41,059 nucleotides of DNA. Source: Octopus bimaculoides. Lineage: Eukaryota. The notes below the pieces were generated by a model. That model saw only the letters and a list, made by a program, of their open reading frames with translations, ran no database searches and had not been told where the DNA came from. The position numbers and the translations under genes were made by a program. Below, one piece after another: positions 6,190 through 34,823 of the stretch (the stretch's first letter is position 1; every line of letters begins with the position of its first letter). The stretch lies in contig NC_068983.1 of the NCBI RefSeq assembly GCF_001194135.2, forward strand, positions 46,122,229 to 46,163,287. The letters are read 5' to 3'.

Positions 6190-6230
6190 CAATGGTTGTC
6201 AAGCATTGGCAGAGACAAACACAGAAACAG

Positions 6231-6298
<68 letters not shown>

Positions 6299-6460
6299 CG
6301 GGTTTCCACGCAGTTTCTGTTTACCAAATTTACTCACAAGACATTGGTCAGCCTGGCGTTGTAGTATCATAGAAGACACTTGCCCAAGAGTCCATGCAGA
6401 GGGATCGAACCCGGAACCATTTGCATGCAAAGAGAGTTTCTCAACCAAACACCCATAATA
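6190..6460 (-). mobile_element. Microsatellite-containing SINE copy (head 6297-6460, (TA)n/(CA)n core, partial tail)
   Basis: GACGGG...AGAAGACACTTGCCCAAG...GGATCGAACCCGG matches 7981-8146 and 16671-16830. Confidence 0.65.
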
Positions 6461-6559: not shown

Positions 6560-6775
6560 CAACAAACGCCTTCTTCTCGTCTCCTGTAAGTTGAAATTCT
6601 CTTTTTGTAGAAAGCATAATTCTACATGTTCTCTGAAGATTTGAATAATCAAACGCTGAACACTTTTCCTGTAAACACTTCGCTTTACATAATTTTATTG
6701 TAGATATTCCTTCGCTCACTTCTAAAGAATGGCAGTTAATAATTGAAGCTCCGTTTATCGAAATATTTTTTGACA
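6560..6775 (-). CDS. PAN/apple-like domain exon (216 bp)
   Basis: [14 protein letters not shown]...[27 protein letters not shown]...; shows the PAN core C-x3-C-x4-C-x2-F-x-Y-x6-C; acceptor TTCATTTCAAAG, donor GTAAGC, phase 1-1. Confidence 0.8.
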
Positions 6776-9700: not shown

Positions 9701-12700
9701 AAGGCCAGCAATTTCGGGGAGGTGGGCAAATCGATTGCATCGACCGCGGTGGTCAACTGGTACCTATTTTATCGATTCCGTAGGGATGAAAGGCAAAGTC
9801 GGTCTCGAAGAAATTTGAACCTACAACGTGATGATGGACGAAATCCCGCTAAGCATTTTGCCCCGCTTAGCATTCTTCCAGCTCGTTGCCTTAAGATGAT
9901 AAAATATCAGAAGGAAATATTTGCTTATGCAAAATAGTTCAAAATCTCTTGATGTTTATTTTGCACAGGTAGACGCATTTCAACTAATCTTCGGAAAATA
10001 GATTCCAGACAAATGTGTTTCAGCTACAGATCAGAATTCACATATCGTCACACAACCTGAGCACAATAAACAATGATTACGATACAACGGATGAAGTACA
10101 AGCTCAGATCATCAGATAAATGTGAACCGAGCGAGACCAAATTTCTCAAACTCAGCCAAATCTCCATTACTGTCTTAAAAAGGCAAAGCATTTGGATAAT
10201 TTGTTCCTGGATGCACAGCGTCTCGAAAAGAAAACGGAAATGTCCAATTTGTAAATAATCAGCTGGATCAGGGTTGATTTAAGGCTAAGTAGTAACAACT
10301 ACTACCAAACGTATATGTTCCACTGTTACAGTCGATTCGCAATATTAATACTAAATAAGGCAACAAGCTAGCAGAATCGTTAGCACGTCAAGAACAATCC
10401 GTAGTGGCATTTCGTCCGTCTTTACGTTCTGGGTTCAAATGCCGCCGAGGTCAACTTTGCTTTTCATCGTTTCTAGGTCGATTAAATAAGTACCAGTTGT
10501 GTACTGGAATCGATGTAAAAGACTTAAGCCTCCCCTTAAATTGCACAAATTTGAAACCAATATTAACTCTAAATATTGCAGAGCGCTCTAGGGCAAGAAA
10601 TAATTTCCTTTTGGCTCAGACCAAAACACGATTTCATTTTCCATTTGAAACTTATTCTTTTACTTTCATCGCCAGCTAATGCCCCCTTTAGAATAGTATA
10701 CACCTCAAAATATTCTTACATCACATACTTGATAATGCCCCACTCCCTTTTTAAATTTTCGTCAGCCTTTATTTAAAATACTGGTTAGACACCAATGGGT
10801 AACACAGATTTTCACCGGTCGATGAGGGTGACATTTATGTGGTTGCTTGATATGTGGATATTACAGTCTATCTTCCCTCAAACACACTCTACAACCTTTA
10901 TGTAAAAAAAAAAAGACGTTGTATGACGTAGTCTGCTGTATTCTATTTCTAGAATATAAAGACAATTGCTGTCTCTTACAGAAAGCCTCTGATCATAAGC
11001 TTACTCATTCAGAGCTGACTGGTGCTAAACACATGAGAGTTGGGTTTTTTTTTTCTTTTTCAGCACCAGCAGAGAGTTTTTCTTTATGCAAGCAAAGATC
11101 ATTAAAACAATAAATAATGAACATATTACTTGGTACCTCATTACATACATGGTTAAGTCAATACAACAAACAGCAACAGCTTATACAGTTCCACATTCTT
11201 TGATACATACATACATACATACATACATACATACATACATACACTACAAATGATCCCGATATCAAGGAATTATAAAAATCCACTTCTTAACCCATTACCT
11301 CCCATAATTCTATTAACTGGAATTTTTTTATGAAACTTTGATTTCGAGCATAAAACAGCCTTAGAAACACGCTAGAATGATCAAAATAACATTTCAAAAT
11401 AGCATTTTAAATAGAAATAAGCGAGAAATTGGGTGAAAAATTAGCAAACTTCATTTGAATATCAGAGAAATATACCTAGTAGATATAGCAAAAAGGTTAG
11501 ATATGTGTAAATATTGACAGATAATTACGAAATTTGTAAATTCTAAGGGATCTCATATGAGATCACTGGTAGGTAATGGGTTAAGATTTAAAGAATGATG
11601 AGCAAAGCAAGATGCTTTCTTTCACAGCCTTGCCGGTCAAAATTTACTCTATGTATGTATGCATGTGTGTATACATATATATATGTATGTGCGTATCTTT
11701 ACACTTCATATATATCTTATAACTTACCTTGTTTAATGCATTTTCCTTCACTCATTATATAGCCATTATCACAAGTACACATTCGCTTGTTATTTTCAAG
11801 TGTACAATGACTATTTTCTTGACAGGGTGCTCGTAGTTTTTGTACCTTGTTCCTTCCCAAGCATACATATTTCGTATTGCAGTCGGTGCTATACATTTCT
11901 TCTTTAAGCTAAATATTGTTTAAAAAGCAAAATTAAAATATCGTTCATTAATCTTTGCCAGGTAATGATACAGGAAAATATCAGATCTTTGTTCTAAATA
12001 CAAATGAGAGTACGTTAACAAGGAATTAGTGTGCTTGCAATAAGTTCTATCGTAGCATATCACCAGGAGAACCCTGATTGAGTTGATCTATGATCAAATA
12101 TATTATCAGCCTCTCTTTCTAGTGACACCTAGAATTACATTATTCAATGTGCACATTTATAATACTATACTATATCAGGGAGAGCGATCATGTAGAATGT
12201 CTCTTAAGTTGTAAAATATTTGTTTAATTATGCGCAGTCTTTATGTGCATATCTGAAACGCTTTCAAGCATAGATAATCGCTTAAATTTCAACATTGAAA
12301 AAAATCAACCATATTGGACCCTTCGTCTTCCAGCTCAACCATATTGGACCCTCGTCTTCCAGCTCAAAATTATAGAAGGCGATAGCATCAACACTAGGTT
12401 CATCAAGGAAGCCGTCTTCAATAATTTCTTTACTCGCTAAAGATCAGCCTTCCCTAACAATGCCAAGGTTGGTGTAAACGAAACAGACTGACCCATATTA
12501 GATTGCACAGATGCATTGAGACAGAAGATAGGGCCATATATAACGTAAAGTTCGAAAACGTTCTAGAAGTTAATGCATATTTAATATTTGTTACTAGTCA
12601 ATTTTAAGGTATCAAACTTAAGGAACGTTAGACCTCTTCCAAAATATGTTTCATTAAACTACCATATTATCCCTAAAGTCATTGTTAAAAAAATGGTTAG

Positions 12701-15700
12701 ATATACAGCAGATGTAGTCAGCCCCCATCGCAACGGGAATATGTATGGAAGAAACGGTTTCTCAACGACAGAAGCCATGCGCAGTAGCAACTTCCCCAGA
12801 TATATACTTGCGTATTTACACCGTATATCAGATCTTATACACTATATCCAACAAATGTAATATTAGAAGTGTGATTCAGCCATTAAACGTCCGAATGAAA
12901 GAGCATCTCCTCACATACAAAGTATATATTCAAAAGCATCTAGGACAACACTGCAGCATGAACAAAGAGATCGTAATTAAAATTAAAACCATAAATCGTA
13001 ATATCGGTAACCTACAGATAAAAGAAGCTTCTGAGGAAAAAATAACAGGCCTACAGTTAACAGACAAGAAACGAGAGAGTTGCCATAGCTACTAAATATA
13101 TAAACAGTTTTTACAGACACCATCGTAAATTAAAGGACTCGGTCCAATATTTCATCTGTCGTAGGATATCGCCAGGAGAACCCTGATCGAGTTGATCTAT
13201 GATGAAATACATTATCAGCCTCTCTTTCTAGTAACACCTAGAATTACATTATCCGATGCGCACATTTATAATGCTATACTATATCAGACTCTTGTCCAGA
13301 CACTGACAGCCGATGGGACGACATCCACAGCCACAACATTTATATATGTGGCAAGTCAAATGTCCATATGGATTTAACCCACAAAGGGATTGGAGTCGTA
13401 AATTACATCTTGTACTTGTTTTGTATGACATTTCAAAAAGTGTTCTTAACCGAAAATATTCGGCGTATTAAATATTTATTCACGACGATTGTCGTGGTGG
13501 TGACGGTCGTAGAATGTGTGGTAGTGGGGAAGTGATTTAGGTGGTGAGAGTGATGGCGGTGGTGATGATAGTCGAAGCAATTTTAACTTTGATGGGATTA
13601 GATACCAGAACATAAAGATGCAGAACTAAATATTACAAGACATTTTGTCCAAAGCTCCACCGATCCTGCCAATCCCTTGTCCTTGCTATATTACCACCCT
13701 GAATTCTGTCGATGATTATAGAACTGGAAGTACTTACATTCATATAAAAGTTAGCATTCCTACAGCCACATTTTGATGGCCTGACACATTCATTTCCGCT
13801 AAGAATATAACCCGGCTGACAAATACATCCTTCAGTACGAGCCATACATTGTGGCTTCAAATTCAAGCATGAAGGTTGACATGTAGGTGTGTTGTATCTG
13901 TATTCCTGGAAACTCGGACAAAATTTTGCTGAATATCAAAGAAATGAGAAATAGTTAAAAAGTTTCAATAGATCTGATCATATCAATACACACACATTAT
14001 ACATAATTCGTAGCTGTGTGGTAAGAAGCTTGCTTTCCAACCACATAGTTCCGAGTTCAATCCCACTGTGTGGCACTTTGGGCAAGAGTCTTCTTTTATA
14101 GCCTCGGTTGCTTATACTACATGGAAACCGGGTAGCTAGACTAATTGATAACAGGATTGAAAATAGAAGTAACTTATACATAAAATAAACAATTGGAGAT
14201 GACTTAGGATATTTTTCTCTACATTCTTAATCGCAAAAAAAATTTTACAATTATTGTCTCAGGTTCATTTCGATCTATTAAACTCTCCCTTTATAAAATG
14301 TTGCCTTCTAACTACTATAAAGGAATGTGCAAGATATGGAGAACAGCTGGAAGAGTCGTGGCGTGTCAATGCTGCTGAAGATAAGGCTACTTCGGGCTGC
14401 CTCTTTCTCTATTGCGACGTACGGCTGCGAGTCGTGGACAATGTTGAAGGCAGACGAGAAAAGAGTGAGTACTTTTGATATGTGATGTTACCACAGAATC
14501 CTTAGAGTGTAGTGGAGGGAGAGACAGACGAACAACTGGGTACTAGAAAAGCTCGGTTGCGGGATGACGCTTCGGTGAAACATCATGAAGCAGAAGCTAC
14601 GGTTCTTTGGCCACGTCATGCGCCGGGATGAACTTGAGCGAACGATCATAACTGGCAAGGTGAACGGCAGAGGTAAAAGAGGCAGACCACCCACTTCTTG
14701 CCTGAAAGACATCACAGCCACAGGATTGTCTTTATTCTCAGCTGTCCATGGGGTAGAGGACAGGAGAAGGTGGCAAGATATCGTGGTGATCACAGCATCG
14801 CATAATGCGACACTTGACTAGAAGAAGAAGAAGAATACCATAAAGTTTTTCACTAAGCATGTTTTTTTTTTCTTGTCCATATATGTCTAAGTTATATAGC
14901 GACAGAAATAGTAATACAAAAGGACACAAGATTTTATCACGACGTCCCCGCGTAGAGTCTAGAATGGCTCCATTTATGCAGTTAAGTGGTGGTGGTGGTG
15001 GTGGTGAGTCATTAGTGTTGGATCTCCGTCATTAAACGATGAGGATCCAATTGCTCGATTATCTAAATCACTAGCTCCTAAATTGACGTAAAAGTAGCTA
15101 CACATTTCATAGATGTGTATAATTCTCATGTAGAGGAAATTGACACGGTGCGTGACAATGCCAGCTGTTTTTTTTTAATTTTTTAATTACAGTTACAGTG
15201 CACATGGCAGACTTCCGTACAGCTTCCATCTGCCCGAAATTCCCCTCACAACGTTCAAGTCGAACCGAGATAATAGAAAAGGACATTTTCTCAAGATGCC
15301 GTACATTGGGATCGAACCCAAGCCCTATTAGTTGCGAAACATAGTTCTTAAACATTCGGCTATATTGTGCCTACATCTAGGCATCATCTTACCCATGAAC
15401 AACATACTGTCAGTTACAGGATTCAAAACTCTAGACTGGTTATGCACTTGGTCATCTGCACTCTTCTTTGGAATATGAGAATTAAGGAATAAGATTTCCT
15501 ACAATATTTATTGAACAGACATTGCATGTATTATTCTGTGAGATTTACTTTCATAGTAAGATATTTTTTTATATTATAAAGAAAGGAAATATATGAGGTT
15601 TGGTAGAAACAGTAGATTGTTATTAAAACTTACGACAGCTGGCTTCTTTTCTCCAGTCCACAATAACTCCAGCATTTTCACACTGACTGGCAAACCCTTC

Positions 15701-16631
15701 AAGTATTTGACAGAAAACCTTTTTCATATTATCTTCGTCGTTTTTATATGAACAGACGTCTATTCTACATGAATCGATAAACTGTTTAGTCTGCGTATAA
15801 CCTAGTGTTTCAACACATGTCTGAAATGCCTTTCCGTTAATAATGACATCACATCTCGCGGTTTCTTTCGTTTCACAATTGCAGTACAGAGGAGTCGATT
15901 TACAACTGAAGCAAAATAAGAATGTAAACGAACGTGTATTGCTAATATTTATACATCTGCATGCATTTTATTTATTTTGTACTTTCGTTCATGCGGAGGC
16001 GCAATGGCCCAGTGGTTAGGGCGGCGGACTCGCGGTCATTGAATCATGGTTTCGATTCCCAGACCGGGCGTTGTGAGTGTTTATTGAGCGAAAACACCTA
16101 AAGCTCCACGAGGCTCCGGCAGGGGATGGTGGCGAACCCTGCTGTACTCTTTCACCACAACTTTCTCTCACTGTTTCTCCCTGTTCTCTGTTGCTCCTGT
16201 AATTCAAAGAGTCAGCTGTGTCACGCTGAATATCCCCGAGAACTACGTTAAGGATACACGTGTCTGTGGAGTGCTCAGCCACTTGCACGTTAATTTCACG
16301 AGCAGGCTGTTCCGTTGATCGGATCAACTGGAAAATTCGACGTCGTATGCGACGGAGTGCCAACTTTCGTTCATGTATTCATCTAGACATTCACATTTTA
16401 GGATTGCATCAAGAGGTAAAACATAAAAATGTATTATTTCATTGATTGTCTTAGCTGGGCATCTCATTCACTTACGCGTATTTTATTGCTCTCTTACTTG
16501 TTTCAGGCGTTACTCTGCAACCATTCTGGGGTACAGTCTTGAAGNNNNNNNNNNNNNNNNNNNNNNNNNNNNNNNNNNNNNNNNNNNNNNNNNNNNNNNN
16601 NNNNNNNNNNNNNNNNNNNNNNNNNNNNNNN

Positions 16632-16671
<40 letters not shown>

Positions 16672-17465
16672 GACGGCCTTCTTTCAGTTTCCGTCTACCA
16701 AATCTACTCATAAGGCTTTGGCTGACCCGAGGCTATAGTACAAGACACACTTGCCCAAGGTGCCTCGCAGTGGGACTGAACCCAGAACCATGTGATTGGC
16801 AAGCAAGCTTCTTACCACACAGCTACGCCTGCACTTTTATAAGCTTTCAATACACTTCTCTTTAGATATTAGCGACGGAAAGAATATCAGTGCTGAGTGT
16901 ATGCATTGTAAGAACGCCGTAATACTTCGATATTCGTCTTGAAAGAATATATCGTATAGACGTTTAGTGCATAAAAGTATGAAAATATCATTAGCAGACG
17001 AAATTTCCTTCCCAGTCAATCGCAACGTTAGAAAAATATAATTCTCTCAATTGGTACACTAATTTGTGAATAATTAGCTAATTAGCCCTTACCTATCTTC
17101 CAGCTCATCAGAGTCATCAGCGATGTGGTAACTATCACCAATTAAAGTAAATTTCTTTGGGTGTAATGAAACATCTTGTCCAGACTTTGTGCGGAGATCA
17201 TCTTTGATTCCATTGCAGTCACCACAGATGCCGGTCAGTTCATTAGCGAATGATAAGGGAAGGCTCACAGTAACTCGATGTCTTCCGTCAAATTCCACGG
17301 TCATTCCCCATCTGGTAGTAACTATTACCCAACCGACGGCAAAACTCACAGAAATGTCTTCGTAATTTATGACTGGGAGAGATCGTTCTTCTGAGTTCAC
17401 CTAAAAGGAATACATAAATAAAAATGAAATAAAATGTATGTGTTCGTCTGTGTGTACGTATGTGT

Positions 17466-17559
<94 letters not shown>

Positions 17560-17883
17560 GTAGTAAGGGATTACTAAGATCATTTACCGGTAGCTTTCAG
17601 TTACATAATGCTATGCCACTCCGTAATAATCTTTATATATATTTATATATATATATATATATTTCAAAATGTAACTACATGTGAATCATTGGCGATTTTT
17701 TTTCCTCCGTCCCCCTTTTTCTATTGGACTTTCCTCTGTCTCCTTTTTCTGAAGAAGAGCGTTGCTCGAAACGTAAAACCATCTTTCTTTCCTTCCCTGA
17801 GCGTCTGCTAATACTTTACATGTACCACATGCTCGCGTTGTTGTTTTTTTGTGTTTGTTCTTTGTTTTGGGGGGGATGGGATT

Positions 17884-17918
<35 letters not shown>

Positions 17919-18479
17919 GAAGAAGAAGAAGAAGAAGAAGAAGAAGAAGAAGAAGAAGAAGAAGAAGAAGAAGAAAAAGAAGAAGAAGAAGAAGAAGATA
18001 TTACACATTACCAAAATTCTATTGGCTGGCAATAAGCTTATTGTGATATTATTTTCCAGCTTTATATCCACAAAACGCGTATAAGTGACATGTTTATTGC
18101 TTCGATGTTCATTCTTCACTTCGACAGAGAAATATGTTTTATTGTATCCTTGTTTAGTTGTCACCAAAGAATATTTACAGCCTCCCATGTAGTGTATCAT
18201 TTCTCCATCAAACGTCTTGTAATGCGGATCACCATAGACAATACATGTACATTTTCTAACTGAAAAATAAAGACTCGAAATAGTAAATAGGAAGAAAAAC
18301 GCACAGCGAGTCTCATAACATCACATTTAATCGCTATTTACGAATTTCGAGTACGGGAAGAATGATTAAAATTCCTGGCTTAAAGGATATCGCAAAAGGC
18401 CCAAACTACTGTGTTCTTTTTACAGGGCTTATAAAACTGAAGGATCGCTACAATCTATATATATAAAAATGAGAATGTG

Positions 18480-18510
<31 letters not shown>

Positions 18511-21500
18511 GTGAATCCCTAAAACTCGAGAACTACGCAACCAATTTCATTCAAATTTTTCACATGCCTTACTTAGGGTTCCAGTTGTGTTTTAGTCAAA
18601 AAATTTTTTTAACTTCTTGCAGAGTTCGAGCCCACGGCAACATAATATCTCCTCCACTATTTAAGTATTATGTGTCAAAAGTGAAACAAAAACACTCGTG
18701 TCAAATACTTTCACTTTAAAAATGAAACTATTCCACTAACTGAAACAATCGCATTTCGATACTGTAATGACAGATACTTTCGAGAGAGAGAGAGAAAGAG
18801 AGAAAGAGATAGAGAGAGAGACGTATATGTATACATATAGATGTATATGTACACGTTATTCCACTAACTGAAACAATCACATTTCGATACTGTAATGACA
18901 GATACTTTCAGAGAGAGAGAAAGAGAGAAAGACAGAAAGAGAGAGAAAGATATGTATATGTATACATATACATGTATATGTACACGTATATGCATAGATA
19001 TATAGATATAGATATAGATCTATATGCATACATGTATATGTATACATATGTGTAGATGTATATATATATAGATGTACATGTAATATGTACACATATATAC
19101 ATATATACATATATACATGCATACAGATATCTATACATATATACATATATATGCATACAGATATCTATACATATATACACCCATCACACACAAACACATN
19201 NNNNNNNNNNNNNNNNNNNNNNNNNNNNNNNNNNNNNNNNNNNNNNNNNNNNNNNNNNNNNNNNNNNNNNNNNNNNNNNNNNNNNNNNNNNNNNNNNNNN
19301 NNNNNNNNNNNNNNNNNNNNNNNNNNNNNNNNNNNNNNNNNNNNNNNNNNNNNNNNNNNNNNNNNNNNNNNNNNNNNNNNNNNNNNNNNNNNNNNNNNNN
19401 NNNNNNNNNNNNNNNNNNNNNNNNNNNNNNNNNNNNNNNNNNNNNNNNNNNNNNNNNNNNNNNNNNNNNNNNNNNNNNNNNNNNNNNNNNNNNNNNNNNN
19501 NNNNNNNNNNNNNNNNNNNNNNNNNNNNNNNNNNNNNNNNNNNNNNNNNNNNNNNNNNNNNNNNNNNNNNNNNNNNNNNNNNNNNNNNNNNNNNNNNNNN
19601 NNNNNNNNNNNNNNNNNNNNNNNNNNNNNNNNNNNNNNNNNNNNNNNNNNNNNNNNNNNNNNNNNNNNNNNNNNNNNNNNNNNNNNNNNNNNNNNNNNNN
19701 NNNNNNNNNNNNNNNNNNNNNNNNNNNNNNNNNNNNNNNNNNNNNNNNNNNNNNNNNNNNNNNNNNNNNNNNNGACACACATAGTCCCCAGTTGGTAACA
19801 TTGATTTCAAGGCCCTCCTAGATGAGAGACTGGCATTCCACTTAATGTCTATGTTCCATGCTGGCATGGATTGGAGAGTTATTAATGTAGAAATATGGTA
19901 TCGTAGCTACTAACAGTTGAGGGTTGCGTAGTCTAGACGGCGTTTTTAGATTTCATTATTCTCTTTAACCCGGGCAAATCCGGGTATTTCTGCTAGTAAG
20001 TATATAAATCTGAGAGGGGAATATGTTGAATAAAATCATAATTAACTGATCCTCATTTATTTTCTTTAACCCAAAGGCATAGAACTTTCCAGCACCACCT
20101 CGTCTATTTCTCTATATTTCTTCTCTGGTGAAAGACGTCTGCACGAAACGTTCGAATTATTTTCTCTACATGATGCACGCACTTATTTCTTTCTGTATAC
20201 TTTATAAAACGGTTTTTTTTTCTTCTTTGACATCACAGATCTCAATGGTTTCCTTCCTACATTATGTTTTTATTTTATTTTGCACCAAAGAGGATGTCAG
20301 AATTTAAATTTAACACAGGGGTTGATTAATTTCCATTAATATTTACATTTAGAGATATAATTGACGAAGACGGAATAGTCGTTATTCTATTTTGAATGAA
20401 AACATCCAGTAATTTTTCTATGATTTTTGAACACCATGAAAGAGTTTCCTGCTCATAATATTTCTTTCTACTATAAGTTAGCAAAGGCGTTAGCACGCCG
20501 AGCAAGATGCTTGGCGGTAATCTGTCTGTCTTTACGTACTAAGTTCAAATTCCGCTGAGGTTAACTTTACCTTTTGGAGTCGATAAAATAAGTACCAGTG
20601 AAACACTGGGGTCGATCTAATTGATTAGCCCCCTCCCCTGAACTCGCTGGCTTTGTACCAAATTTTGAAAGGCAATATTTCTTTCTATATAGGTACAAGG
20701 CCTGAAGATTGGGGGAGGATATTAGTTAATTACATCGCCTCTAGTGTTCAACTGGTACTTATTAAATCGGTCCCGAAAGGATGAAAGGCGAAATCGATCT
20801 CGACGGAACTCAAAATGTAAAGATGCAAGAAATTCGTCAAAGCATTTTTTCCGGTGTGTTAACGATTCTTCTATCTCGCCGCCTTTTTTCTGATCAAAAT
20901 AGGACCCAGAGGTATGTCAATCTGTTGGAATTCACATTCAGTACGAAGCAATTGGAATTCGATTAGAATTTATTCGATAGTGATTTCTACTGATTAGGAA
21001 GAAACGATTCAAATTAGTGAGATTTAAATTAGTCATGAAATTGAAGTGATGACGTTCATCCATTGCCAAAGATCATTACTTTTACAAATGGAATGAAATA
21101 GCTTTCACAGAATACTTGAAACTCTCTCATCGACATGTGGCTCTTGTGGAAGACACTATCCAATGTGTCAGATTGTGAGACAGTGTGGAAATGATACAGC
21201 GTGGAGGTGAGACAGCGTGGCAGTGAGACAACATGGAAGCGAGACTGTGTGACAGTGAGACGGCGTGGCAGTGACAGCGTGGAAATGAGATTGTGTGACA
21301 GTGAGATGGCGTGGCAGTGAGACAGCGTGGAAGTGAGACAGCGTGGAATTGAAAGTGTGTGACAGTGAGACGGTGTGGCAGTGAGACAGCTTAAACAGCG
21401 TGACACCTTGAATAAATGTCTTCTGGTATAGCTCCAGGCTGACTAAAACCATATGAGTGGATTTGTTGGACAAAAACTTAAAGGAAACCAATCGGGCGTG

Positions 21501-21710
21501 AGTGTTTGTGTCTCCATGCCTTTACATCACGCGGTAATTACCATCATACTAGTTTACAGCCCTCCGTAAAAACATGCCTACACATAGGAAATCATTACTT
21601 GGATTGTAAACACGTGAAGGCTAGCGACAAGAAAGTTATCCGGTCGTAGAAAATTTGCCTCAACGAATTTTGTATGATTCATGCAAACATGGAAAAGTGA
21701 ACGTTAAACC

Positions 21711-21753
<43 letters not shown>

Positions 21754-23800
21754 GTGATGGTGATGGTGATGGTGATGGTGATTATGAGGAAGAGGAGCAA
21801 GAGCAGGAGCAGCAGCAGTGGAGGAGGAAGAGGAGGACCAGGAAGAGGAGGACCAGGAACAGGACCTTTTGGGTAAATACTGCTGAATATCACAATATTG
21901 TTGAAGATGTGATTTAATAAGACGTCTTTATCGCATTAGGCATCATATGAAAATTAACCCCTTTAAAATAACACAGCAAAAATAGAATTATAGAATTATA
22001 GAATTATAGCAGAATGTGTTAGGCTTACCTTGTTGGCAAAAACGTCCAAAATAGTTTGCAGTGCACTGACAAGTGTAGTGGAAAGCCTTATTAATACAAG
22101 TTCCTCCGTTCTTACACGGACTGTTTTGGCACGGATTAACTAGGAAATATAAATATTTCTTAATGTGAAAAGAATTTATAAATTTTAAGAGAACATGAAA
22201 TAATACCTTTTTTTTTTAAATACTGGATCTCAAATCAGACAAACTATAAAGAATAACATGTATCCAAAGAGTTGTTAAACCAATATTACACGCTGCTTCT
22301 TATAGCTTTGTCTGCTCCGAGCTTTGCCATTCAAAAGAAAATAGAATTATATAAATTTATATTAAAATATTAGAATTATAGTACGTTTGTGCTTTCGAGA
22401 TCTACGTAAATATTGCAATCATTATGTATTTTAGAGCTATCTGCAATGAGTGACAAAAACACAGTCATGGTATAACGGTCTTTTGTCAGAGTTAATTCTT
22501 CAATAACTATATCTGTTTAGCTAGAGGTCAATCCTGACCAAGCTAACATATAATCAAAGGCTTTCCAGTCGCGACCACATCATCTTTTTAAAGATATCTA
22601 GGACAGTAACATCTAATGTATCTTTTGAATTTTAAAGGTGGTTGGTCTTGATTTCTAGCAACTGGGTCATTATCGGCTATATACAGTCGCTCTATAAGGA
22701 ATACGCTATTTTTTTTTTTTTAATCGTAGGTCATTTATCTAAAACTGAATCACAATACGAACTATCTTTCTCATTTACATAGATGTATGAAAGAAACTGT
22801 TTTAATGCTTACCAGAACACATATTTGTTACCAGGGCGGTTTTTATTGAGATAAGTGAATCATAGCCGTCCACAGTGAAGAGACCACCTGAATCTGGTCG
22901 ACTAGAAATTGTTTTCAGTTCTGCAACGGAAACGTTATTTCCGATTCCCAACACAAGAACATTTATTCCATTTTGTTTCAGTAGTGCAGCTGCACGTGAC
23001 GTATACGCCGGTAGTTTTGATTTACTTCCAATTATTGGAATAACACTACGAGATGTTTTGGGACGACTTCCGAAGTTGTGATTGAAGACCTTTGCTCTAA
23101 TATAATTCAACCCTACATGAAACAAAGGTTTTCCCTTAGAATACGTTATATTCTGTAATGCCTTCATGAGTGTTTCTAAATTTCCACCGTCTTTCAAGGA
23201 AATATGATTATTAGCAACTGTGCTGGTTGTAATGAGTCCAATTCTCATAGATTCCAGCTGAATATTAAAGGATTGTATAAGATTCTTCACAAACTGTTTA
23301 ATTTTTATAAAGTTTTCCTCTCCAATGCTTTCAGAATCGTCGATCATAAACGCAAGATCAATTGGTTTATTACACACTGAAACAGAAATAAATACGTAAT
23401 AAAACATCTTAGTTTTCGGTTTTTAGATACATTTCGCGGATGCTCTGGGGTGCATCATCAATGGTGTTTCTAGGGTTCCAGAAAATGCACGTATATTTTA
23501 GTAAAAGTTACGTAATAAATTTCTCCTGAAAAACATCTCATCCTACAAGAATCAAAATCCTCTATAAAATATCAGAATCAAGTGGTTAATAAATGAATAA
23601 ATGAATAAATATATTCATTACGTGTCACAGATATATATATACATATATATGCATATATATATGCATACATATATATACATATGTATATATACATGCATAT
23701 ATAAATATATATACATACATATATATACACACAAACATATATGTACATACATATATATACACATACATATATGTACATACATATATATATATACATATGT

Positions 23801-23843
<43 letters not shown>

Positions 23844-25490
23844 NNNNNNNNNNNNNNNNNNNNNNNNNNNNNNNNNNNNNNNNNNNNNNNNNNNNNNNNN
23901 NNNNNNNNNNNNNNNNNNNNNNNNNNNNNNNNNNNNNNNNNNNNNNNNNNNNNNNNNNNNNNNNNNNNNNNNNNNNNNNNNNNNNNNNNNNNNNNNNNNN
24001 NNNNNNNNNNNNNNNNNNNNNNNNNNNNNNNNNNNNNNNNNNNNNNNNNNNNNNNNNNNNNNNNNNNNNNNNNNNNNNNNNNNNNNNNNNNNNNNNNNNN
24101 NNNNNNNNNNNNNNNNNNNNNNNNNNNNNNNNNNNNNNNNNNNNNNNNNNNNNNNNNNNNNNNNTACATACATATATATATATACACTGAATTGTGGCAC
24201 AGTATGGACGGATTCCGGAGTACCGAGGAACTTTTATGTAAATATATCAAATTAAGAATTCTACGAGGTATATTACAATGGGCAATACCAAGTGGAATCT
24301 CACCTTCTATCTCTCATGTTTCTCCCTCTTTTAATTTCTTCTTTGTGATATAATTCTTGGGAAAGAATACATTTGCGGCTGAAGATAGCTTTATACTATC
24401 AATTATATACCAATAATGATGCAACAACTATAAAGCTTGAAACACGTGTACCGCAGAATCCGTTGTATTTTGTTTTTTGTTTTTATTTTTACATTTCCAA
24501 TTTTATATATATATACAGAAGTTATTTTGGAATTAATTAAGTGTTGACTTATAGACTTAAAAAGATTCAAGATGAGTATTATGACATCAACTTGACCAGT
24601 ATAGATGTTCTACAAAGACTCTGCGCATTGCCTCTTACAGACTTAACAAGTAAAAGGCAATACCACTTTCAATTCATAGCAAATAGAAAATGCAATGTTC
24701 TAACATCCATACATTTTTAGAGAGTAGAATAGCAGAAACCAAAGTCATTCGACAGAATAAATATCAGACTTTAAAAATAAGTACTGGGGGCCGATTAGTT
24801 CGACTAAAAATTTGAAGGCGGTGCTCCAGCAAGGCTGTAATCTAATGACTGAAACAAGTAAACACTAAACGGTAGTTGAAACCGATTTAATCAGCAGTGC
24901 TCTCGACCACTAAATTTTTTTCTGGTACTTAAATAAGTGTTCATTTGTAATTTGTAAGGAAAAGGTAAAGATACTTTCTTGATCCCTACAGACTCATAAG
25001 GGCCTGTTTCCCGATTTTCATGGCGTATAGATTCCCCACCTGGATGGGACGCCGGTCTGTTGCAGGATTACTCATTTTTATCAGTTCAGTGGACTGAAGC
25101 AACGTGAAATGAAGTGTTTTACTCAAGAACACAACGCGTCGGCCGGTCCAGGAATCGAAATCACAATCTTACGATCATGAGGCTAACACCTTAACCACTA
25201 AGCCACGCTATTCATTTGTAATTCATTTATAATGCTTTACTCACCTATAGGTCTACATATATTATTTGTATATTATTTGACTGCGGCCATGCTGGAGCAC
25301 CACCTTTAGTCGAGCAAATCGCTGCCAGGACTTATTCTTTATAAGCCTAGTACTTATTATATCGGTCTATTATGCCGAACCGCTAGGTGTCGGGACATAA
25401 ACACACCAGCATTGGTTGTCAAGTGATGTTGAGGAGACAAACACTAACACACAAACATATATACACACACACACACACACGCACACACAT

Positions 25491-25527
<37 letters not shown>

Positions 25528-28500
25528 ATATATATATATATATATANNNNNNNNNNNNNNNNNNNNNNNNNNNNNNNNNNNNNNNNNNNNNNNNNNNNNN
25601 NNNNNNNNNNNNNNNNNNNNNNNNNNNNNNNNNNNNNNNNNNNNNNNNNNNNGGATCGAAATTTCGGCCAGGTCATCTGTGCCTCTCATTCTTATAGAGT
25701 CGATAATACAAGTGCTACTTGAAGACTGGACTCCATTTAATCAAATTACCACCTCACCTGAAATTAGTGGGCTTCGACAAAAATTTCAATCCTGTTATTA
25801 CAATTATACTTGAAAACAACGAAGAACAAATTATTTGCCTAAAATTACCAGTTAAGTGAAAATGCATTAATAATAATTATAAAAACTTTACTCACCAGTG
25901 TGAACACATTTTCCGTTATGAAGAATGAAATTTTCATTACAAACACATGCATGTCTCCGTCTTTGAATTCCGCAATGGCTGCTTTCACCACAAGGAGCGA
26001 TATTTTCTGTTACTATTTCGTTACCAGGTTTACATATTTTCTTCGTTTTACAATCTGCTGATATAATTTCCTCATTAACCTGTAGGTAAAATTCAATAAA
26101 TTACAACCATATTATACCAGTGTATATTTATGGATAGAACATTTGATGAAACTTTAAAATATTCCAGCAGAATATTGATGGTGTTTCTAAGAGTGAAGCT
26201 GAAAACCTCATTTTATCACGTATGATAATTCATTACAATACGCTGTCATTGATATTCCTAGGTAAATTTCTAGTAGCGGAACACAGAGAGCTTTTATATG
26301 AGGAAAGTATACGTCGTGAACAGATGATCGGTTCCAAAGTTAACATCAACAAAAATGTCCAGCAATCTATTTAATAACGAGTTAGCTATCTATATCTTTT
26401 GTGCCTAATGGTGTTATTATACAGCCCAAATGTATGTCGGTGTGTATGTACATTTGTATGTGTGTGTCTGTCTGTCTGTGTGTGTATATGTGTGTGCGCG
26501 CGTGTATGGTATACATGTTTATCTATGTATACAAACTTGTATATAGTACTTTACCTTCATATATATCTTGTTGTCGCTACAACCGCATTCTGATNNNNNN
26601 NNNNNNNNNNNNNNNNNNNNNNNNNNNNNNNNNNNNNNNNNNNNNNNNNNNNNNNNNNNNNNNNNNNNNNNNNNNNNNNNNNNNNNNNNNNNNNTGCCAG
26701 AGTAAATTGTCATAGTGATAACTACGGAAATTTGCAGAAAGAGTATGGGCCGCACAGAAATGTACGAGTGGTCCAGACGTTTCCAAAATATCCGAAAAAT
26801 TGTCGATGTTCACGAACGTTCTGGAAGACCGACAACCAGCAGAACTGAGGAAAACATCGCAATTGTGCGTGAAGCTGTGAAGAATAAACGTCGAATCTCC
26901 ATCTGTAAGCGATCAGAGGATATGCAGATTAGTTACGGCTCAGTTCAGTCCATTACTACAGATGATTTGATCATGAGAAGCGTTTCTGCCAAGTTAGTGC
27001 TCAAACTGTGTACAACTGACCAAAAATACANNNNNNNNNNNNNNNNNNNNNNNNNNNNNNNNNNNNNNNNNNNNNNNNNNNNNNNNNNNNNNNNNNNNNN
27101 NNNNNNNNNNNNNNNNNNNNNNNNNNNNNNNNNNNNNNNNNNNNNNNNNNNNNNNNNNNNNNNNNNNNNNNNNNNNNNNNNNNNNNNNNGTTATATACCT
27201 CGGTCACCCGCTAAACATTTTCTTTCCAAGCACTGCTATAGAAGGCGAAAGTGAGCTACAACGTCAATACTTCGAGAGCATGCACAGTAGACATCACGCT
27301 GAGATCAAGCTCAATCTGTACACAATGGCTTCATTCTACGTGTTTTCGCTTCGTTACTATATCAAAGGTCCGGATACTGACTGATCAGACCTCGAAAGTG
27401 TTTGCTTCAAGTTATGAATCACTGTCATCTAAAAGCACAAACTCGATTCCTACAGTCGAACAATGCATCTGATGGATTCACCAATTACAAAATTATAATC
27501 TCTCAAAGAACTGAAATGTAATTCGACTAAATTTCATCTCGGATACATCAAGATGTAATGCGCCATTTATCCTGTTCTTTGAGGAATGTAAGGAATCGGT
27601 ATATCTTACGGCATCGTGATTTTTCTCTCCAGTTAACGAAAATCCCCAAACTTTCGCATTCTGAAGCAAAACCTTCAATGATTCGACAGAAAACAGAGTG
27701 AAGGTTGTTCAAATCGTTGTGATAAACACAGACATCGATTCTACAAGACTCCAAGTATTCTTCTAGACTCGAAGCTCCGATCTTTTCAATGCAGGCGTCA
27801 AAGATTTTGTCCTTCATAAAAACACATTCTTTTGTCTCTTCCTTTGTACAATTCGCATTAAGATCTCCCACATTGCATCTGAAAGTTAAAATAGAAAGCG
27901 GAATGATGAAGTTAAGAATTAATTGTTATGATGTACGATTTCTCATTTGCTAACTAGAAACAATGCGGATTTTCTGAGTAAAACTTACTGTTGAGTGGAT
28001 CAATTATGATTCACATCTCTCTACTTTCGTTAGCTTCTGATGTACAACAAAATTCCAGAAGTCAAATATTCCTTACATCTAAAACGTTACCAAATCATCT
28101 AAGATTGTTAACTCATTTCTTCCCTTATACATACAAGCACAAACACGAACATCATTCACCATATACAAGTAACACATGCGCNNNNNNNNNNACAAGCACA
28201 AACACGAACATCATTCACCATATACAAGTAACACATGCGCACATTCTTTGATCGTAGATCAGCTGGATCAGAACGATTCATTTCCTTTTTATTCTAGGCA
28301 CGAGGCTCGTAAATTTTGAGGATGGGGCCAGTCGATTAGATCGACCCAATTACGCAGCTAGTACATAATTTATCGACCCTAGAGGAATTTGAAAGAACAN
28401 NNNNNNNNNNNNNNNNNNNNNNNNNNNNNNNNNNNNNNNNNNNNNNNNNNNNNNNNNNNNNNNNNNNNNNNNNNNNAATCTGACGTTTGAGAGGATGGAG

Positions 28501-31500
28501 TCAGTCGGTTCCAACTTGATTGCTACTTACTTTATCGAGAAGGATGAATACCAAAGACGGCGTCGTCGACATTTCAACGCAGAACGCAAAGATCAAACAG
28601 AAATAATTCTAAGCATTTTGGTGTGTGAGGCAACGGAAACTATTTTTATTTAAGGCTGTATTTTTATTTAAGTTTATCTTTATGGAGGCTAATCGATAAC
28701 ATCGACCTAGTATTTGACTGGCAATATTATCGACTACGAACTCGGAATGTAAGGAACCCAAGGAATCGCCGCAAATCATTTTTGCCACGCTCTAAACATT
28801 CTGCCAGCTCACAGATTAACGTGAAATCTTGATATTAAAACATTTAAAATACTATCAACAATTTACATAATATTTATTCTTGATTTTGGAGTTTGAGAAA
28901 GAAAATAGTCATTACTTTGTTTCTGGTTTATCACTGTCATCTGTAACTTGATAACTGGCACCAATTAAAGAAAATTTATCTGGTTTCTGAGAAACATCTT
29001 CACCAGANNNNNNNNNNNNNNNNNNNNNNNNNNNNNNNNNNNNNNNNNNNNNNNNNNNNNNNNNNNNNNNNNNNNNNNNNTCAATTGATCGGCAAATATT
29101 GGTGGTAATGTAACAGTGACTCTGTGTCTACCATCAAACATGACCTTCAAACCCCACATAGTGGTAACTGTAATCCACCCGACAGAGTATGTGGCTGAAA
29201 ACTCTCTATAATTTCTTACAGGTAAGGATTTCTCTACTGAATTTATCTGAAAATTAAATTCAAGAAAATAGGACAGGCGTGCAAATCAAGTAATATTTCT
29301 TTATACATAAATNNNNNNNNNNNNNNNNNNNNNNNNNNNNNNNNNNNNNNNNNNNNNNNNNNNNNNNNNNNNNNNNNNNNNNNNNNNNNNNNNNNNNNNN
29401 NNNNNNNNNNNNGAAAATAGGACAGGCGTGCAAATCAAGTAATATTTCTTTATACATAAATCATGGATTATTTTTAATATTTTACTTGTTTCAGTCATTG
29501 GACTTTGGCCATGCTGCAGCACCACCTTCAAGAGATTACTCGGGCAAGTCTTCCGACGTACATCTTTTATTTTATATCCAGTACTTACCCTATCGCCTCC
29601 TTTTACCGAACCGTTAAGTTACGTAGACGTAAACAAATCTCACCAGTATATATATATATCACTGCTACATTACATTTTGCTCTTTTTATAATTTGGCCAC
29701 CTTAGAATATACTTAAGAGCATGGAAATCATAATTCAATTGACACGCCTTCGCTCCTTTCATTAAAAAATATAACATCAACATCTTCTGAAAGCCGAATA
29801 TCTATGAATTACCCACACTGTCTTCTGGAAACGACGACTATTGGTAATATGATGCTCTTTTGTCAGCTAGTGATGTGCTTACATACCACATGCTGAAAAA
29901 CAGTTTGTTAGCATCTCACCGATTGAAGAGGATCTCTTATGTTCATTTGTTTGGCAACCGCTAAAATCCGTTATTAATCATATTGTAATAACCGTGATTA
30001 ATTCCACATTTTATCAATGATTTTATATCTATTTTAATACGTAAATATGTTCAGTATTATGTTATTGATTCGATACGTCAAATATTACAATTACGTCTTT
30101 GATTTAGTTCCATATTCAATTTTTTCCTAAGTCTACGATTTAAATTTGTTTCCTTGCATTATATCTTCGTTTCGTTTCTTGGTTACAATTATTAGAAGCG
30201 TGACATTCGAAAATACAACTTCACCTGCAGAATGAAATTATGGTTGGTTATTACACATTTACATAACTATAGAGTGAAGAGAGACAAAATGTACGTACCA
30301 AGATTTTGTTAGCTGGCAACAGACGAATTGTGTAACCAGTGAGTTTGACATCCACTAAACGTGTGTAAGATACACGGTCATTTCCTCGGTGTTCGTTCTT
30401 TACTTCAACAGAAAAGTCGGTATTGTTCGATCCGTTCTTATTAGTAGCCAGTGTATATTTGCATGTCCCCATGAAATGTATCATTTGTCCATCGAACGTT
30501 CTATAGTGAGGGTCACCAGACGCTTCACATCTACAGGGCCGCAGAACTGGAGAAAGAAACCAATGGAGACTTATAGCACAGACAATGGCGCATAAAACTG
30601 ACCACAGTTGTTCATTTTATTGACTTCTAGGATATGAAAAGCGTAGATGATTCGGAAGGAGATTTAATGCTCTGAGGACACAAAGGGACATAACTTAAAA
30701 CCATAAATTTTTTATCCCACTCAGTATTTGCTGCTCTATGTCTAGTGCTACACATTTAAGATAAGTGCAGAGATAATTCCGTGGATCCTGTCTGTGGTTG
30801 AGACTTTATTTAATCCACGACATAATAAAGAAAGGCAATATTTACTCTACTCGTATTTGGTTTCAGCATGGAGACAGCAACTAAATGCAGCATGAAGTCG
30901 GGCGTTCTACCAATTCTGCCATCCACTGCCCGATTAGATATGGCATTGAGTCTTTATATTTATATAGCTTCAAAGCAGATTTGAATAATTTGAACTAAAT
31001 TCAAATAGCCGTAACTGCTAACTCAATTCATTTTGTCTCGCGTTTTATCTATCCCAGCTTCCAGCGCCTTTTATGTTAAGTTTATATAAATACTTACCAC
31101 TGCATGCTTTAGTTGAGAATGTCGATGATATACTCTGTAAGACAGCAAAACTATTCACTGAAAATACGTATTTCGAACTCGGCTCGCTACCAATTGCTTT
31201 GAGTTCGGTATTCGAAATCTTTTTCCCGACTCCAATTGCGAATATAATAGTTCCACTCTTTTTGAGCTTTTCGGCTGCTTTTACTGTCCAGACTTGATTA
31301 TTTGAGTTTCCGTCTGTGATGACAACTGCAATATTCAATACATCTTTTCGGTCACCAGATATTGCACTGAAGGAAGAATCTTTAAGGTAATTTAAAGCGG
31401 CATAGGTGTGTGTCCAGCCTCCGGTGTGACCTATTCTGTCAATCGCTGCGTTTATTTCGAGGATATTTCTGTATTTATTCATATTAAATTGGTTCTTTAC

Positions 31501-33291
31501 AGCGGTGCTAAATGTGATAATACCAACTTGGACAGCATTTGACGATATTGGAAAAGATGAGACAAGTTTCTTGACAAAATGTTTCATCAATAGAAATTCA
31601 TCCTTAGAAATGCTTCCAGAGTCGTCTAATACAAACATGATATCTGCTACAGCATTTCCACACTCTGAAACTAAAGTGAAATAAAAAATGTATTACAATA
31701 GTAATATATATTTACATGAATGTTTAAGTCGGCGTGATAACAGAATCGTTAGCATGCCAGGCGAAATTCTTAGCGGCGGTTCGTCCGTCTTTACGTTCTC
31801 AGCTCGAATTACATCAAGGTCGACATTGCTTTTTATCCTTTCGGAATGGGTAAAATAAGTACCAGTTGAACACTGGAATCAATTTAATCGACTTATCCCC
31901 CTCCCCAAAAATTGTTGGCGCTGTGCCAAAATTTAGAACCAATATACTTGGTCGAGTGTGCATGTGGGAGGCTAAATATTCCGGTACACCCCTATATATA
32001 TAGTCTAGGTAAATGCATCTGATGAAGACTGATCAAATTTACGTTGACAAACGTATTTGAAGAGTCAGAAACCGGTCCTGCATTATCCGATTCTGCGTTG
32101 TCCATTTATCGAATGTCCTTCCTAGAGGTAAGACAAATTTTTCGTGTTTGTTGCACTCACACGTCCTTGCCAGTATATACGCAGTGAAGCTTTACAATAG
32201 CGTCATATTTGTATCTTAGATAAATTGTAGATATGTTTCGACCAAAGATTGGTCCAGGCCATGTCTAACTTAGTAGCACCACCTGATACGATTATCTAAA
32301 TCCTTTTTACAGTCAAGTTTTGTCTATGGTCCATTCAAGTAGTGAGTTCTTATTGAGTGAGCTGTATCCAGGTATGGGTGGCTTGTCTGGTATTCTTTGA
32401 AGAAAGCTGTCCAGACTCCGTTTAAAGCTGATAAGATCCTTTTCCTCTTTTATCTGTTTCGGGACAATGTTAAACAGGGCAGGGCCTGTTGAGGTAAAGA
32501 AATTATGCCGCAATGTACCTATATGTCGTGATTCTGAATTGGGCAGAGGACGTATGGCTCGTGGTCCCAGGCTTGGATGAACCTTGAAACTAATTTTCAG
32601 GTCGTTTGGGCAATGCTGGCGGTATATTTTCCACATCGTACAAATGATGTACCGCTCGCGGCGGCGCTGGAGAGAGCAGAGCTTCAAGGCTTTAAGGCAG
32701 TCCCAGTAATCAAGATCAATCATGCCTTTAATTCATTTGGTGAGTGCCCTCTGGGATGATTCAATCCTCGAGATGTTTTGTTTTGTATGGGAAGACAACA
32801 AGGGGCAGCAGTATTCGAGGTGTGGTCGTACAAAGGAGAAAAGTGGAATGATGACACCTTGTTTTTTGGACCGGAAGTTTCTTAAGATCCAGGAGCTCAT
32901 CCTACGAGCTATATCGACCTTATTTTTTATGTGGACACTCCAATTGAGGTTGTTGTCAACAATTACACCCAGATCTCTGGTATTGTTGGATGCCGTGAGC
33001 GGTTCCCCTGAAGGAAGACGGTATGGCAATTTTAGTATGGACTTTCTTCCAAAATGCCTCTGCTCAAATTTTCCCTCGTTCAGTTTCATTTTGTTTTTAT
33101 CTGCCCATTGACTCACAGCATATAGATCAGTCTGGAGTTGGGTTCGGTCTTCTTCATTGATGATTTGCTGGAGCTTAGTGTCATCAGTAAATATTTTCAC
33201 TTTGCAGTGATTTACGACGCTGGAAAGGTCATTTATATAAATCGGCTGCTATTTCCAGTAAATATTGGTGCTTTGTTGTAACACTCATCTG

Positions 33292-34355: not shown

Positions 34356-34823
34356 GGATAGAAAGAGAGAAAGAGAGAAAGAGGGGGAATTTTGTGGAAT
34401 AACATGCAAACTTTCTCCTAAGGTCCTAACCAAGCCAGTCAACCAATCGCGCCTTTCTCAATATGTAAACATGAACAACCTACGTTAGCTTTAAATATAC
34501 TTGTAAAACAAAATCTATGGCAAAACTATGCCTATAAATTATGGGGACTTTTAATGTTATACTTACGTATGTTACAGTCTCTTCCAGTGTAACCAGGTCG
34601 GCAGTTACAAGTAAATGTATGTCCTTTCCTGATACATTCGCCGCCGTTCTTACATGGTTTCGTATAGCATGGGTTGACTAGTGTATAAAAGAAATAGAAG
34701 CTGTATTTCACAATCACATCTTTATTTACAACGGAATATAGAAGAATTCGTTTTAAAATTTCTCTTTACTTCTCTAATTATTTTCTCTCCTATTCTCCCT
34801 CAATTGTAGCAAGAAAAATTGAT

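Follow-up and report, generated by a model that had tools for sequence, protein, structure and literature searches.

Introduction

The closest described relatives of the gene treated here are proteins built from D assemblies, that is, from domains in the order VWD-C8-TIL. The families within this superfamily are told apart by criteria that include further domains, such as FCGBP_N for FCGBP (Lang et al. 2016, PMC4948705). FCGBP (IgGFc-binding protein) is a mucus protein of mammals that strings together 13 D assemblies without a mucin PTS domain, the number of repeats varying by segmental duplication. The GDPH motif of FCGBP self-cleaves at the Asp-Pro bond, a reaction that needs the Asp and the His and stabilises the domain (PMC10880436). 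Zonadhesin, defined by MAM domains, evolves fast and combines repeated VWD-C8-TIL with EGF-like modules and a mucin-like region. VWF holds three VWA domains as one block between D3 and D4 and also has VWC and CTCK domains, and matrilins place VWA beside EGF. Among the secreted material proteins of molluscs, the tandem EGF-like proteins of bivalve byssus (Mfp-2, Sbp9) have a cohesive role (PMC6244088).

The skin mucus of cephalopods serves as a first-line barrier, and hardly any work has been done on its structural proteins. Here we describe a locus of Octopus bimaculoides that encodes a candidate scaffold protein of this mucus with proteomic support. The stretch of DNA analysed (hereafter, the window) is 41,059 bp long and lies at ~46.12–46.16 Mb of chromosome CM046603.1 (assembly GCA_001194135.2); it has 37% G+C, 15 runs of N and many microsatellites. 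With moderate confidence, we read the window as most of one gene, coding for a non-mucin protein of the FCGBP/zonadhesin D-assembly class that is large, secreted and rich in disulfides and would act as a cross-linker or scaffold of skin mucus. It is an uncharacterised variant of a known protein class and not a new kind of molecule. What interests us most is how quickly the number of cassettes changes from one octopus species to another, together with the strong positive charge of the EGF array.

Results

Two tandem cassettes share one open reading frame

All coding pieces relevant to the two-cassette gene lie on the minus strand. Domains were called by a Pfam scan of the open stretches and exon borders were set by reading the sequence, each exon being flanked by a pyrimidine tract and AG at its acceptor and by GT at its donor. 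The spliced model comprises 20 readable exons, with the gaps in exons A3 and A5 filled by 50 N and 151 N, respectively. It gives one open frame of 1469 codons whose sole stop is the last codon, and the other two frames contain 72 and 132 stops. The encoded order is a cationic EGF array, a first cassette (A: VWA, VWD, C8, TIL, Cys/EGF-like), a second cassette (B: VWA, EGF, VWD, C8, TIL, Cys/EGF-like), then PAN, PAN and the stop. Comparison loci were taken from O. sinensis (CM016861.1, L001) and O. vulgaris (OX597816.1, L002; gap-free, 92 kb read).

The original prediction, drawn from the letters of the window, had named VWA, VWD, C8, TIL and PAN domains, all of which were confirmed by Pfam, and had described a six-exon cassette in two tandem copies with matching exon sizes and identical intron phases. 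The sizes agree at AG/GT borders (A/B: 567/564, 248/248, 308/308 with the gap corrected, 269/272, gap/191 and 184/181 nucleotides (nt)), as do the phases (1,1,0,2,1,0,1 in both), and the cassettes are collinear; cassette B, however, has a seventh exon that encodes an EGF module. BLASTP of A against B returned one collinear alignment of 586 residues (E = 5e-156) at 40% identity, or ~45% without X positions, and the nucleotide identity per exon is 61–69%. The similarity goes far beyond chance, and the cassette duplication is therefore real and, at this divergence, old.

Cassette A opens with the VWA exon A1 (31098–31664, 567 nt, phase 1-1; Pfam VWA 8.6e-43), which is 87% identical to the O. sinensis protein P0004. 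Its VWD domain (Pfam 6.7e-22) is split between A2 (30299–30546, 248 nt; Pfam, AG/GT) and A3 (28916–29246), the latter written as 331 nt including 73 N, with a true length of 308 nt. The C8 exon A4 follows (27610–27878, 269 nt; Pfam C8 6e-12, AG/GT). The TIL exon A5 is readable at its 3′ end, where 40 nt (26555–26594) precede a GT and are 85% identical to the O. sinensis TIL tail. The Cys-rich exon A6 (25896–26079, 184 nt, AG/GT) closes the cassette and lies at the start of the RefSeq model P0018.

Cassette B begins with the VWA exon B1 (22813–23376, 564 nt, phase 1-1; Pfam VWA 7.1e-33; in RefSeq P0018). Its additional EGF exon, Begf (22029–22139, 111 nt, phase 1-1, AG/GT), stands between VWA and VWD and has a dN/dS of 0.08; it is used in P0018 (XP_052822700.1) and in O. 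sinensis P0001, and the same position is filled in the paralogue P0003. There follow, all with AG/GT borders, the VWD exons B2 (18012–18259, 248 nt) and B3 (17093–17400, 308 nt), together encoding a domain with a Pfam E-value of 7.3e-31, the C8 exon B4 (15634–15905, 272 nt; Pfam C8 8.6e-14) and the TIL exon B5 (13738–13928, 191 nt; Pfam TIL 1.1e-8). The Cys-rich exon B6 (11728–11908, 181 nt) is supported by weak Pfam EGF-type matches and by the alignment to FCGBP. We interpret both Cys-rich exons as combining an E module with an EGF-like one; the E part of this interpretation leans on the published VWD-C8-TIL-E composition (PMC10880436).

In A1, alignment finds the residues of the metal ion-dependent adhesion site (MIDAS) intact (DDSGS, GWTHT, ITDG). 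The site is degenerate in B1, which keeps DDSES, lacks the Thr and has IIGSKS where ITDG is expected. By these residues, A1 is predicted to be a VWA domain of the metal-binding MIDAS type, and B1 one that has lost them. The GDPH motif is present in both VWD domains of the window, in A2 and B2. A further VWD motif, GICGDCNG in B3 (17226–17249), has its second Cys two residues past the usual one, the aligned residues of FCGBP being GLCGNYNG; it is invariant across the octopus cassettes and Pinctada.

Assembly gaps and the 3′ end of the gene

The gap at 29008–29080 lies within A3 and, as written, leaves its flanks in different frames. Since the O. sinensis and O. vulgaris orthologues both have exactly 50 nt between the same flanks (5808–5857), the gap should be 50 nt instead of 73, which restores A3 to an in-frame exon of 308 nt; the hidden part carries the TGICGDCNG motif. 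The gap at 26595–26694 hides the first ~151 nt of A5, and a complete TIL exon is present at the matching place in the O. sinensis locus. Further gaps are intronic (16545–16631, 19200–19773, 23844–24164, 25547–25652, 27031–27189, 28182–28191, 28400–28476 and 29313–29412).

Where a single terminal PAN domain had been predicted, the gene appears to have two. PAN2 was found in the window (6560–6775, 216 nt, phase 1-1; Pfam PAN_1 3e-7; 85% identical to O. sinensis P0001), but the orthologue carries two PAN domains, with the PAN1 exon of O. sinensis (L001 49407–49652) placed between B6 and PAN2. No match to PAN1 exists in the read letters of the window, and the flanking alignments place the exon in the gap at 8848–9555, which is expected to contain it. 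The last coding exon (5350–5363) is 14 nt long (CC ATT ACA TAT TAA) and ends the protein in …FVAITY; both exon and stop are the same in O. sinensis.

RefSeq XP_052822700.1 ends differently, with an 87-codon open frame at 8485–8745 (minus strand) in place of the PAN exons. Pfam has no match for this frame, and the O. sinensis locus has nothing that corresponds to it. Probably an insertion was mis-joined or exonised here, the model having chosen it because PAN1 falls in the gap.

A cationic EGF array precedes the cassettes

Five EGF exons are readable upstream of cassette A. The partial exon E0 (40972–41059) is an open frame followed by a GT donor and has a net charge of +10; the gene extends upstream beyond the window. 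E1 (40385–40495, 111 nt, phase 1-1, AG/GT) has a net charge of +12 and an isoelectric point (pI) of 11.2, and E2 (36970–37083, 114 nt, phase 1-1), also at +12, is 79–86% identical to EGF modules of O. sinensis. They are followed by E3 (36543–36656, 114 nt) and by the final member E4 (34567–34677, 111 nt, AG/GT), which aligns to O. sinensis. The EGF modules thus carry net charges of +10 to +12 per ~37 residues, with pI >10.

Two of the modules depart from the usual cysteine pattern. E1 is without its sixth Cys and has Arg instead (CGT for TGT), and a module that ends in GRYRRS is found in the O. sinensis array too. E3 has Ser for its second Cys and carries an additional CC pair, a variant (ISFKNRRTC...GICC) that recurs in O. 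sinensis P0004 at 71% identity. Sequencing error is not their cause, since comparable variants are present in O. sinensis, and the odd or shifted cysteines may provide free thiols.

A homology search with the cationic array returned 49 candidates, and the orthologues themselves were not among them. The array may resemble mussel Mfp-2, a likeness on which this search was uninformative.

The upstream half of the gene has orthologues in O. sinensis (XP_036355134.1 and XP_036354931.1) that are 81–93% identical per exon. Their order is a signal-peptide-like N-terminus, WSC, 9–13 cationic EGFs, VWA, VWD, C8, TIL and the Cys-rich exon. The signal-peptide-like start and the WSC domain (1.4e-10 at the orthologue N-terminus) lie upstream of the window.

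Class membership and related proteins

In cassette B, Pfam gives the VWD-C8-TIL order that marks the D-assembly superfamily; in cassette A it gives VWD followed by C8, the TIL falling within the gap. Against the PDB, the D assembly of cassette B matched FCGBP best (8rde, E = 3.6e-202, six stretches), then VWF, MUC5AC and MUC2; the best stretch of 8rde covered residues 4–388 of the 400-residue query and ran through TIL into B6. An exhaustive homology search of 1.84 billion representatives yielded 9428 matches at E up to 0.001. Those at the top were large proteins with many matched stretches, and the one looked up is named IgGFc-binding-protein-like. A profile search with an alignment of four cassettes recovered the ~15 proteins of the single-sequence search again and no others.

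Several families can be set aside by the domains that define them. No MAM domain was matched by Pfam in the window exons or the orthologues, which speaks against zonadhesin, and no transmembrane segment or cytoplasmic tail was seen by eye: …KKAFVAITY and the stop come straight after PAN2, with no hydrophobic stretch. VWC and CTCK had no Pfam match, so the protein is neither VWF nor a gel-forming mucin. The spliced frame also contains no low-complexity PTS exon, its S+T+P fraction being 0.18–0.20, which again argues against a gel-forming mucin. NIDO/ZP, AbfB and LDLa are absent, which excludes tectorin, otogelin and SCO-spondin, and a coiled-coil or heptad C-terminus, as expected of a matrilin, was not seen by eye. 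FCGBP_N was not found in a Pfam scan of the full-length orthologue P0019, which returned EGF-type, VWA and VWD domains only; this negative depends on Pfam-A holding a model of the FCGBP N-terminal domain, which we assume. By its predicted domain content, the protein belongs to no named vertebrate family under the criteria of Lang et al. 2016 (PMC4948705).

VWA inside each repeat, together with the cationic EGFs and a terminal PAN domain, had been read as suggesting a lineage-specific protein, which does not hold at the level of the unit. Two pearl oyster (Pinctada imbricata) entries, KAK3092700.1 and the FSP39_009936 product, are collinear over the whole VWA-spacer-VWD-C8-TIL-Cys unit, and one P. 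imbricata protein reads SUEL lectin, VWA, TSP1, VWD, C8, TIL, Cys/EGF and shares both GDPH and GICGDCNG. In the amphioxus Branchiostoma belcheri, XP_019624292.1 ('matrilin-2-like') has VWA-EGF-VWD-C8-TIL, Kringle-EGF and VWA-EGF-VWD, that is, two tandem units with VWA in each. These proteins share the unit with the octopus, but the domains around it are others, namely SUEL lectin and TSP1 for the oyster and Kringle for the amphioxus, and none has a cationic EGF array plus PAN-PAN. No experimental study of them was found in our searches. The architecture is therefore fairly widespread, though not characterised. The protein was also suspected to be undescribed: we found no functional study of it in literature searches, but it is already in RefSeq as two fragments named 'zonadhesin-like'. 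A full-text search with accessions and LOC identifiers returned no paper, the mentions being in supplementary tables alone.

A neighbouring paralogue and the turnover of cassettes

The tail-to-tail neighbour is a paralogous gene, of which the window holds the last PAN exon on the plus strand (153–431, or 153–434 with the stop). This stretch shares 64% identity with the end of O. sinensis XP_029633305.1 (P0003). The RefSeq model of the paralogue, 1269 amino acids long, has the same two-cassette order, with VWA and EGF in the second cassette, and its VWA likewise lacks the MIDAS residues. In neighbour-joining trees, cassette A groups with the first cassette of the paralogue, cassette B with its second and with P0006, and the VWA of B1 with the paralogue VWA, indicating that the duplication of A and B predates the gene duplication.

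Cassettes are phase 1-1 units that have been gained and lost between species. In the O. vulgaris locus (L002 34760–88642), five A2–A6 sets occur within 92 kb. The next gene model there has 2245 amino acids and eight more VWD domains. Counted by models, O. vulgaris has about eleven cassette-A copies, mostly without VWA. An extra non-cationic (acidic) EGF exon, DACHGEPCRNGATC, separates some of the O. vulgaris cassette-A copies. In O. sinensis, A6 is present twice, and a second copy of the region lies on an unplaced scaffold. The VWA exon of cassette B has been deleted there; its last ~10 nt remain (L001 ~29905–29915), with the donor GT changed to GC, and because the exon is phase 1-1 its loss keeps the frame. 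BLASTN and TBLASTN for B1 were negative in the O. sinensis locus, and fine alignment points to deletion and not divergence. VWA is thus no fixed part of the repeat, being present in two of the five cassette-A copies in the O. vulgaris locus, and B1 has been lost in O. sinensis.

The comparison of O. bimaculoides with O. sinensis gives a dN/dS of 0.60 for cassette A and 0.43 for cassette B. Such values correspond to weak purifying selection, although that of A, which is multi-copy elsewhere, may compare paralogous copies.

Rearrangements of cassette A are also visible outside the window. In O. sinensis and O. vulgaris, the last 138–139 nt of the VWA-A exon are copied after A2 (L001 3963–4708; L002/L003 36586–37701), and L002/L003 have a partial extra copy of A2 as well. 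The copy in L001 extends into the sequence of the window's following intron, where it is 96% identical to the window, and the rearrangement itself is absent from the window.

Repeats and other open frames

The introns contain an interspersed repeat family (6185–6451, 7767–8152, 16632–16843, 25262–25546 and 29468–29635). Its copies often end in microsatellites adjoining assembly gaps, and each matches the same places, at least five, in the O. sinensis locus. A transposon-like intronic open frame at 38995–39996 (plus strand) has a reverse-transcriptase match (RVT_1, 3.2e-8). The open frames at 32316–33248 (minus strand), 26706–27030 and 14579–14818 (both plus strand) have no Pfam match and, judged by eye alone, are retroelement-like or mariner-like.

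Discussion

The original prediction of a secreted mosaic protein of mucus or matrix type is borne out by the orthologue, which has a signal-peptide-like N-terminus and occurs in two skin-mucus proteomes of O. vulgaris. A0A7E6EIP6, orthologous to the EGF array and cassette A together, is among the VWD/VWA proteins of one (PMC11431876). A0A7E6ERF9, a fragment model of the same cassette, is entry 236 in Table S2 of the other, with 3 unique peptides, 3 peptide-spectrum matches and 18% coverage (PMC10138644). Taken together with the domain families, this suggests a model in which the protein would be synthesised in mucous cells of the skin and folded in the endoplasmic reticulum, with possible self-cleavage at the Asp-Pro bond of each GDPH, as in FCGBP. 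The D assemblies would form disulfide-stabilised, protease-resistant modules that may oligomerise through disulfides. The very basic EGF array could bind polyanionic (sulfated or sialylated) mucin glycans or surfaces, and the MIDAS of VWA-A, the WSC and the PAN domains could bind protein or carbohydrate ligands. The whole protein would thereby act as a multivalent, disulfide-rich cross-linker or scaffold of mucus.

Several observations weigh against this picture of a single gene for a mucus scaffold. The proteomic matches cover the EGF/cassette-A part only, and since the mucus samples also hold cellular proteins (myosin, actin), they establish presence and not role. Cross-linking, ligands and oligomerisation are deduced by analogy with the domain families. 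GDPH is not kept in every orthologous copy, one O. sinensis A copy having GDLH and the O. sinensis B copy GDRH, so cleavage may not be essential. The gene models cited here are automated predictions, and four models of orthologues or paralogues end just past A6 by intron read-through, which allows for a short isoform that ends after cassette A. Lastly, the transposon-like fragment at 26706–27030, on the opposite strand and just upstream of the A5 gap, makes a disruption of A5 possible.

RefSeq itself divides the locus into two 'zonadhesin-like' models, and one may ask whether it holds two distinct genes or yields two distinct products, the upstream one (WSC, EGF array, cassette A) ending after A6 and the downstream one (cassette B, PAN) having its own start. 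The four O. sinensis and O. vulgaris models that read through the A6 donor (P0004, P0019, P0020 and P0005) each terminate in …HTGE or …HAGE, as such an upstream product would. The RefSeq breaks, however, coincide with the gaps in A3 and A5. The first model (468 amino acids; EGF, VWA, VWD) ends at position 29088, at the gap inside A3; the second, XP_052822700.1 (769 amino acids), starts at 26560, at a Met (ATG) within the readable tail of A5; and A4 is stranded between them in neither model. We therefore regard the split as an assembly artefact. The downstream model itself splices the A5 tail, A6, B1, Begf and B2–B6, identically to our model, and the automated models of the other species also continue past A6: O. 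sinensis XP_036356795.1 joins A6, Begf, B2–B6, PAN1 and PAN2, and in O. vulgaris CAI9719090.1 numerous A cassettes are spliced on to B3 and PAN1. For the neighbouring paralogue, too, a single protein is modelled over both cassettes (P0003; the model of 1269 amino acids). With 20 exons on one strand, compatible phases and a frame that is open across every junction, two genes seem unlikely to us, and the cassettes, which the original prediction allowed might belong to separate genes, are joined in transcript models. More weight attaches to the thought that the two-cassette picture reflects a collapsed short-read assembly, in which case the real gene would hold more A cassettes, nearly identical and in tandem, as in O. 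vulgaris. The five A2–A6 sets of that species' gap-free locus and the eight VWD domains of the next model, the doubled A6 and the unplaced copy in O. sinensis, and the crowding of eight of the 15 gaps into 25547–29412 (cassette A and the start of the A6–B1 intron) all suggest that additional A copies may have been merged when O. bimaculoides was assembled. Yet the read letters contain neither a second copy of any A exon nor the acidic EGF exon of O. vulgaris, and the copies may have multiplied in the vulgaris/sinensis lineage alone. We hold collapse to be a serious possibility, though not the one we favour, and cassette B with its junctions would be unaffected by it.

Two further readings concern B1 and the role of the protein, and both appear improbable. 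The loss of the MIDAS residues in B1, and the frame-preserving deletion of the exon in O. sinensis, would fit a decaying, non-functional exon that is normally skipped, leaving a functional protein with one VWA. B1 nevertheless retains, in a genome with a G+C content of 37%, an intact frame of 188 codons with canonical splice sites, is included by RefSeq, and has a MIDAS-less counterpart at the same position in the paralogue. Logan contigs from SRR11869391 and SRR11869384 (L005/L006) carry an intact B1 orthologue of 564 nt with no indels and the same splice sites, at 88.8% nucleotide identity and a dN/dS of 0.31 in SRR11869391. As our principal reading, a B1 pseudo-exon was dropped because the exon is conserved in a second sequencing run. 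As to role, the database name 'zonadhesin-like', the regulation of ZAN-annotated transcripts in the oviducal gland and white body of O. maya, and the cohesive tandem EGF-like repeat proteins of bivalve byssus (PMC6244088) could point to gamete recognition of the true zonadhesin type, or to an adhesive or egg-coat protein. The name is automatic, though, the MAM domains that define zonadhesin are absent, no transmembrane segment is seen by eye, and it is not possible to assign the O. maya transcripts to this locus; the sole direct protein evidence puts the orthologue in skin mucus.

On our preferred reading of one gene for a mucus scaffold, the locus bears on annotation as well as on evolution. 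RefSeq at present breaks the gene up where the assembly has gaps, under a name that misleads. The gain of cassettes, the loss of an exon and the decay of the MIDAS among close octopus species offer a compact example of D-assembly evolution by phase 1-1 exon shuffling. More speculatively, and in our view less likely than not, octopods could have independently built an FCGBP-like cross-linker of mucus from an ancient bilaterian VWA-EGF-D-assembly unit. In this scenario, the extremely basic EGFs would condense sulfated mucins by electrostatic attraction, and the number of cassettes, which shifts fast between sister species (two visible in O. bimaculoides, ~11 or more in O. vulgaris), would tune the mechanics of the skin mucus or its defence.

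Compared with the known systems, the octopus protein shares with VWF the combination of VWA with D assemblies, and VWF (D2 region, E ~1e-55) is the second-best match in the PDB. In the octopus, one VWA precedes each D assembly instead of three forming a block, and the EGF array and PAN domains have no equivalent in VWF. Matrilins resemble it in setting VWA beside EGF, but here a D assembly follows each. With zonadhesin it has in common repeated VWD-C8-TIL with EGF-like modules and fast evolution, and it differs in the absence of the mucin-like region. The likeness to FCGBP goes furthest: tandem VWD-C8-TIL-E assemblies, GDPH in the VWD domains, no mucin PTS domain, presence in mucus and a repeat number that varies. 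Many D assemblies stand in tandem, two in the window, both with GDPH and predicted to be cleaved there, and, in O. vulgaris, five A2–A6 sets followed by eight VWD domains. The differences from FCGBP lie in the number of D assemblies (13 against the two visible in the window), in the VWA and EGF modules interleaved with them, in the PAN-PAN C-terminus and in the WSC and cationic EGF N-terminus. Judged from sequence and by analogy, the octopus protein would thus be FCGBP-like in its working, and not an orthologue of FCGBP.

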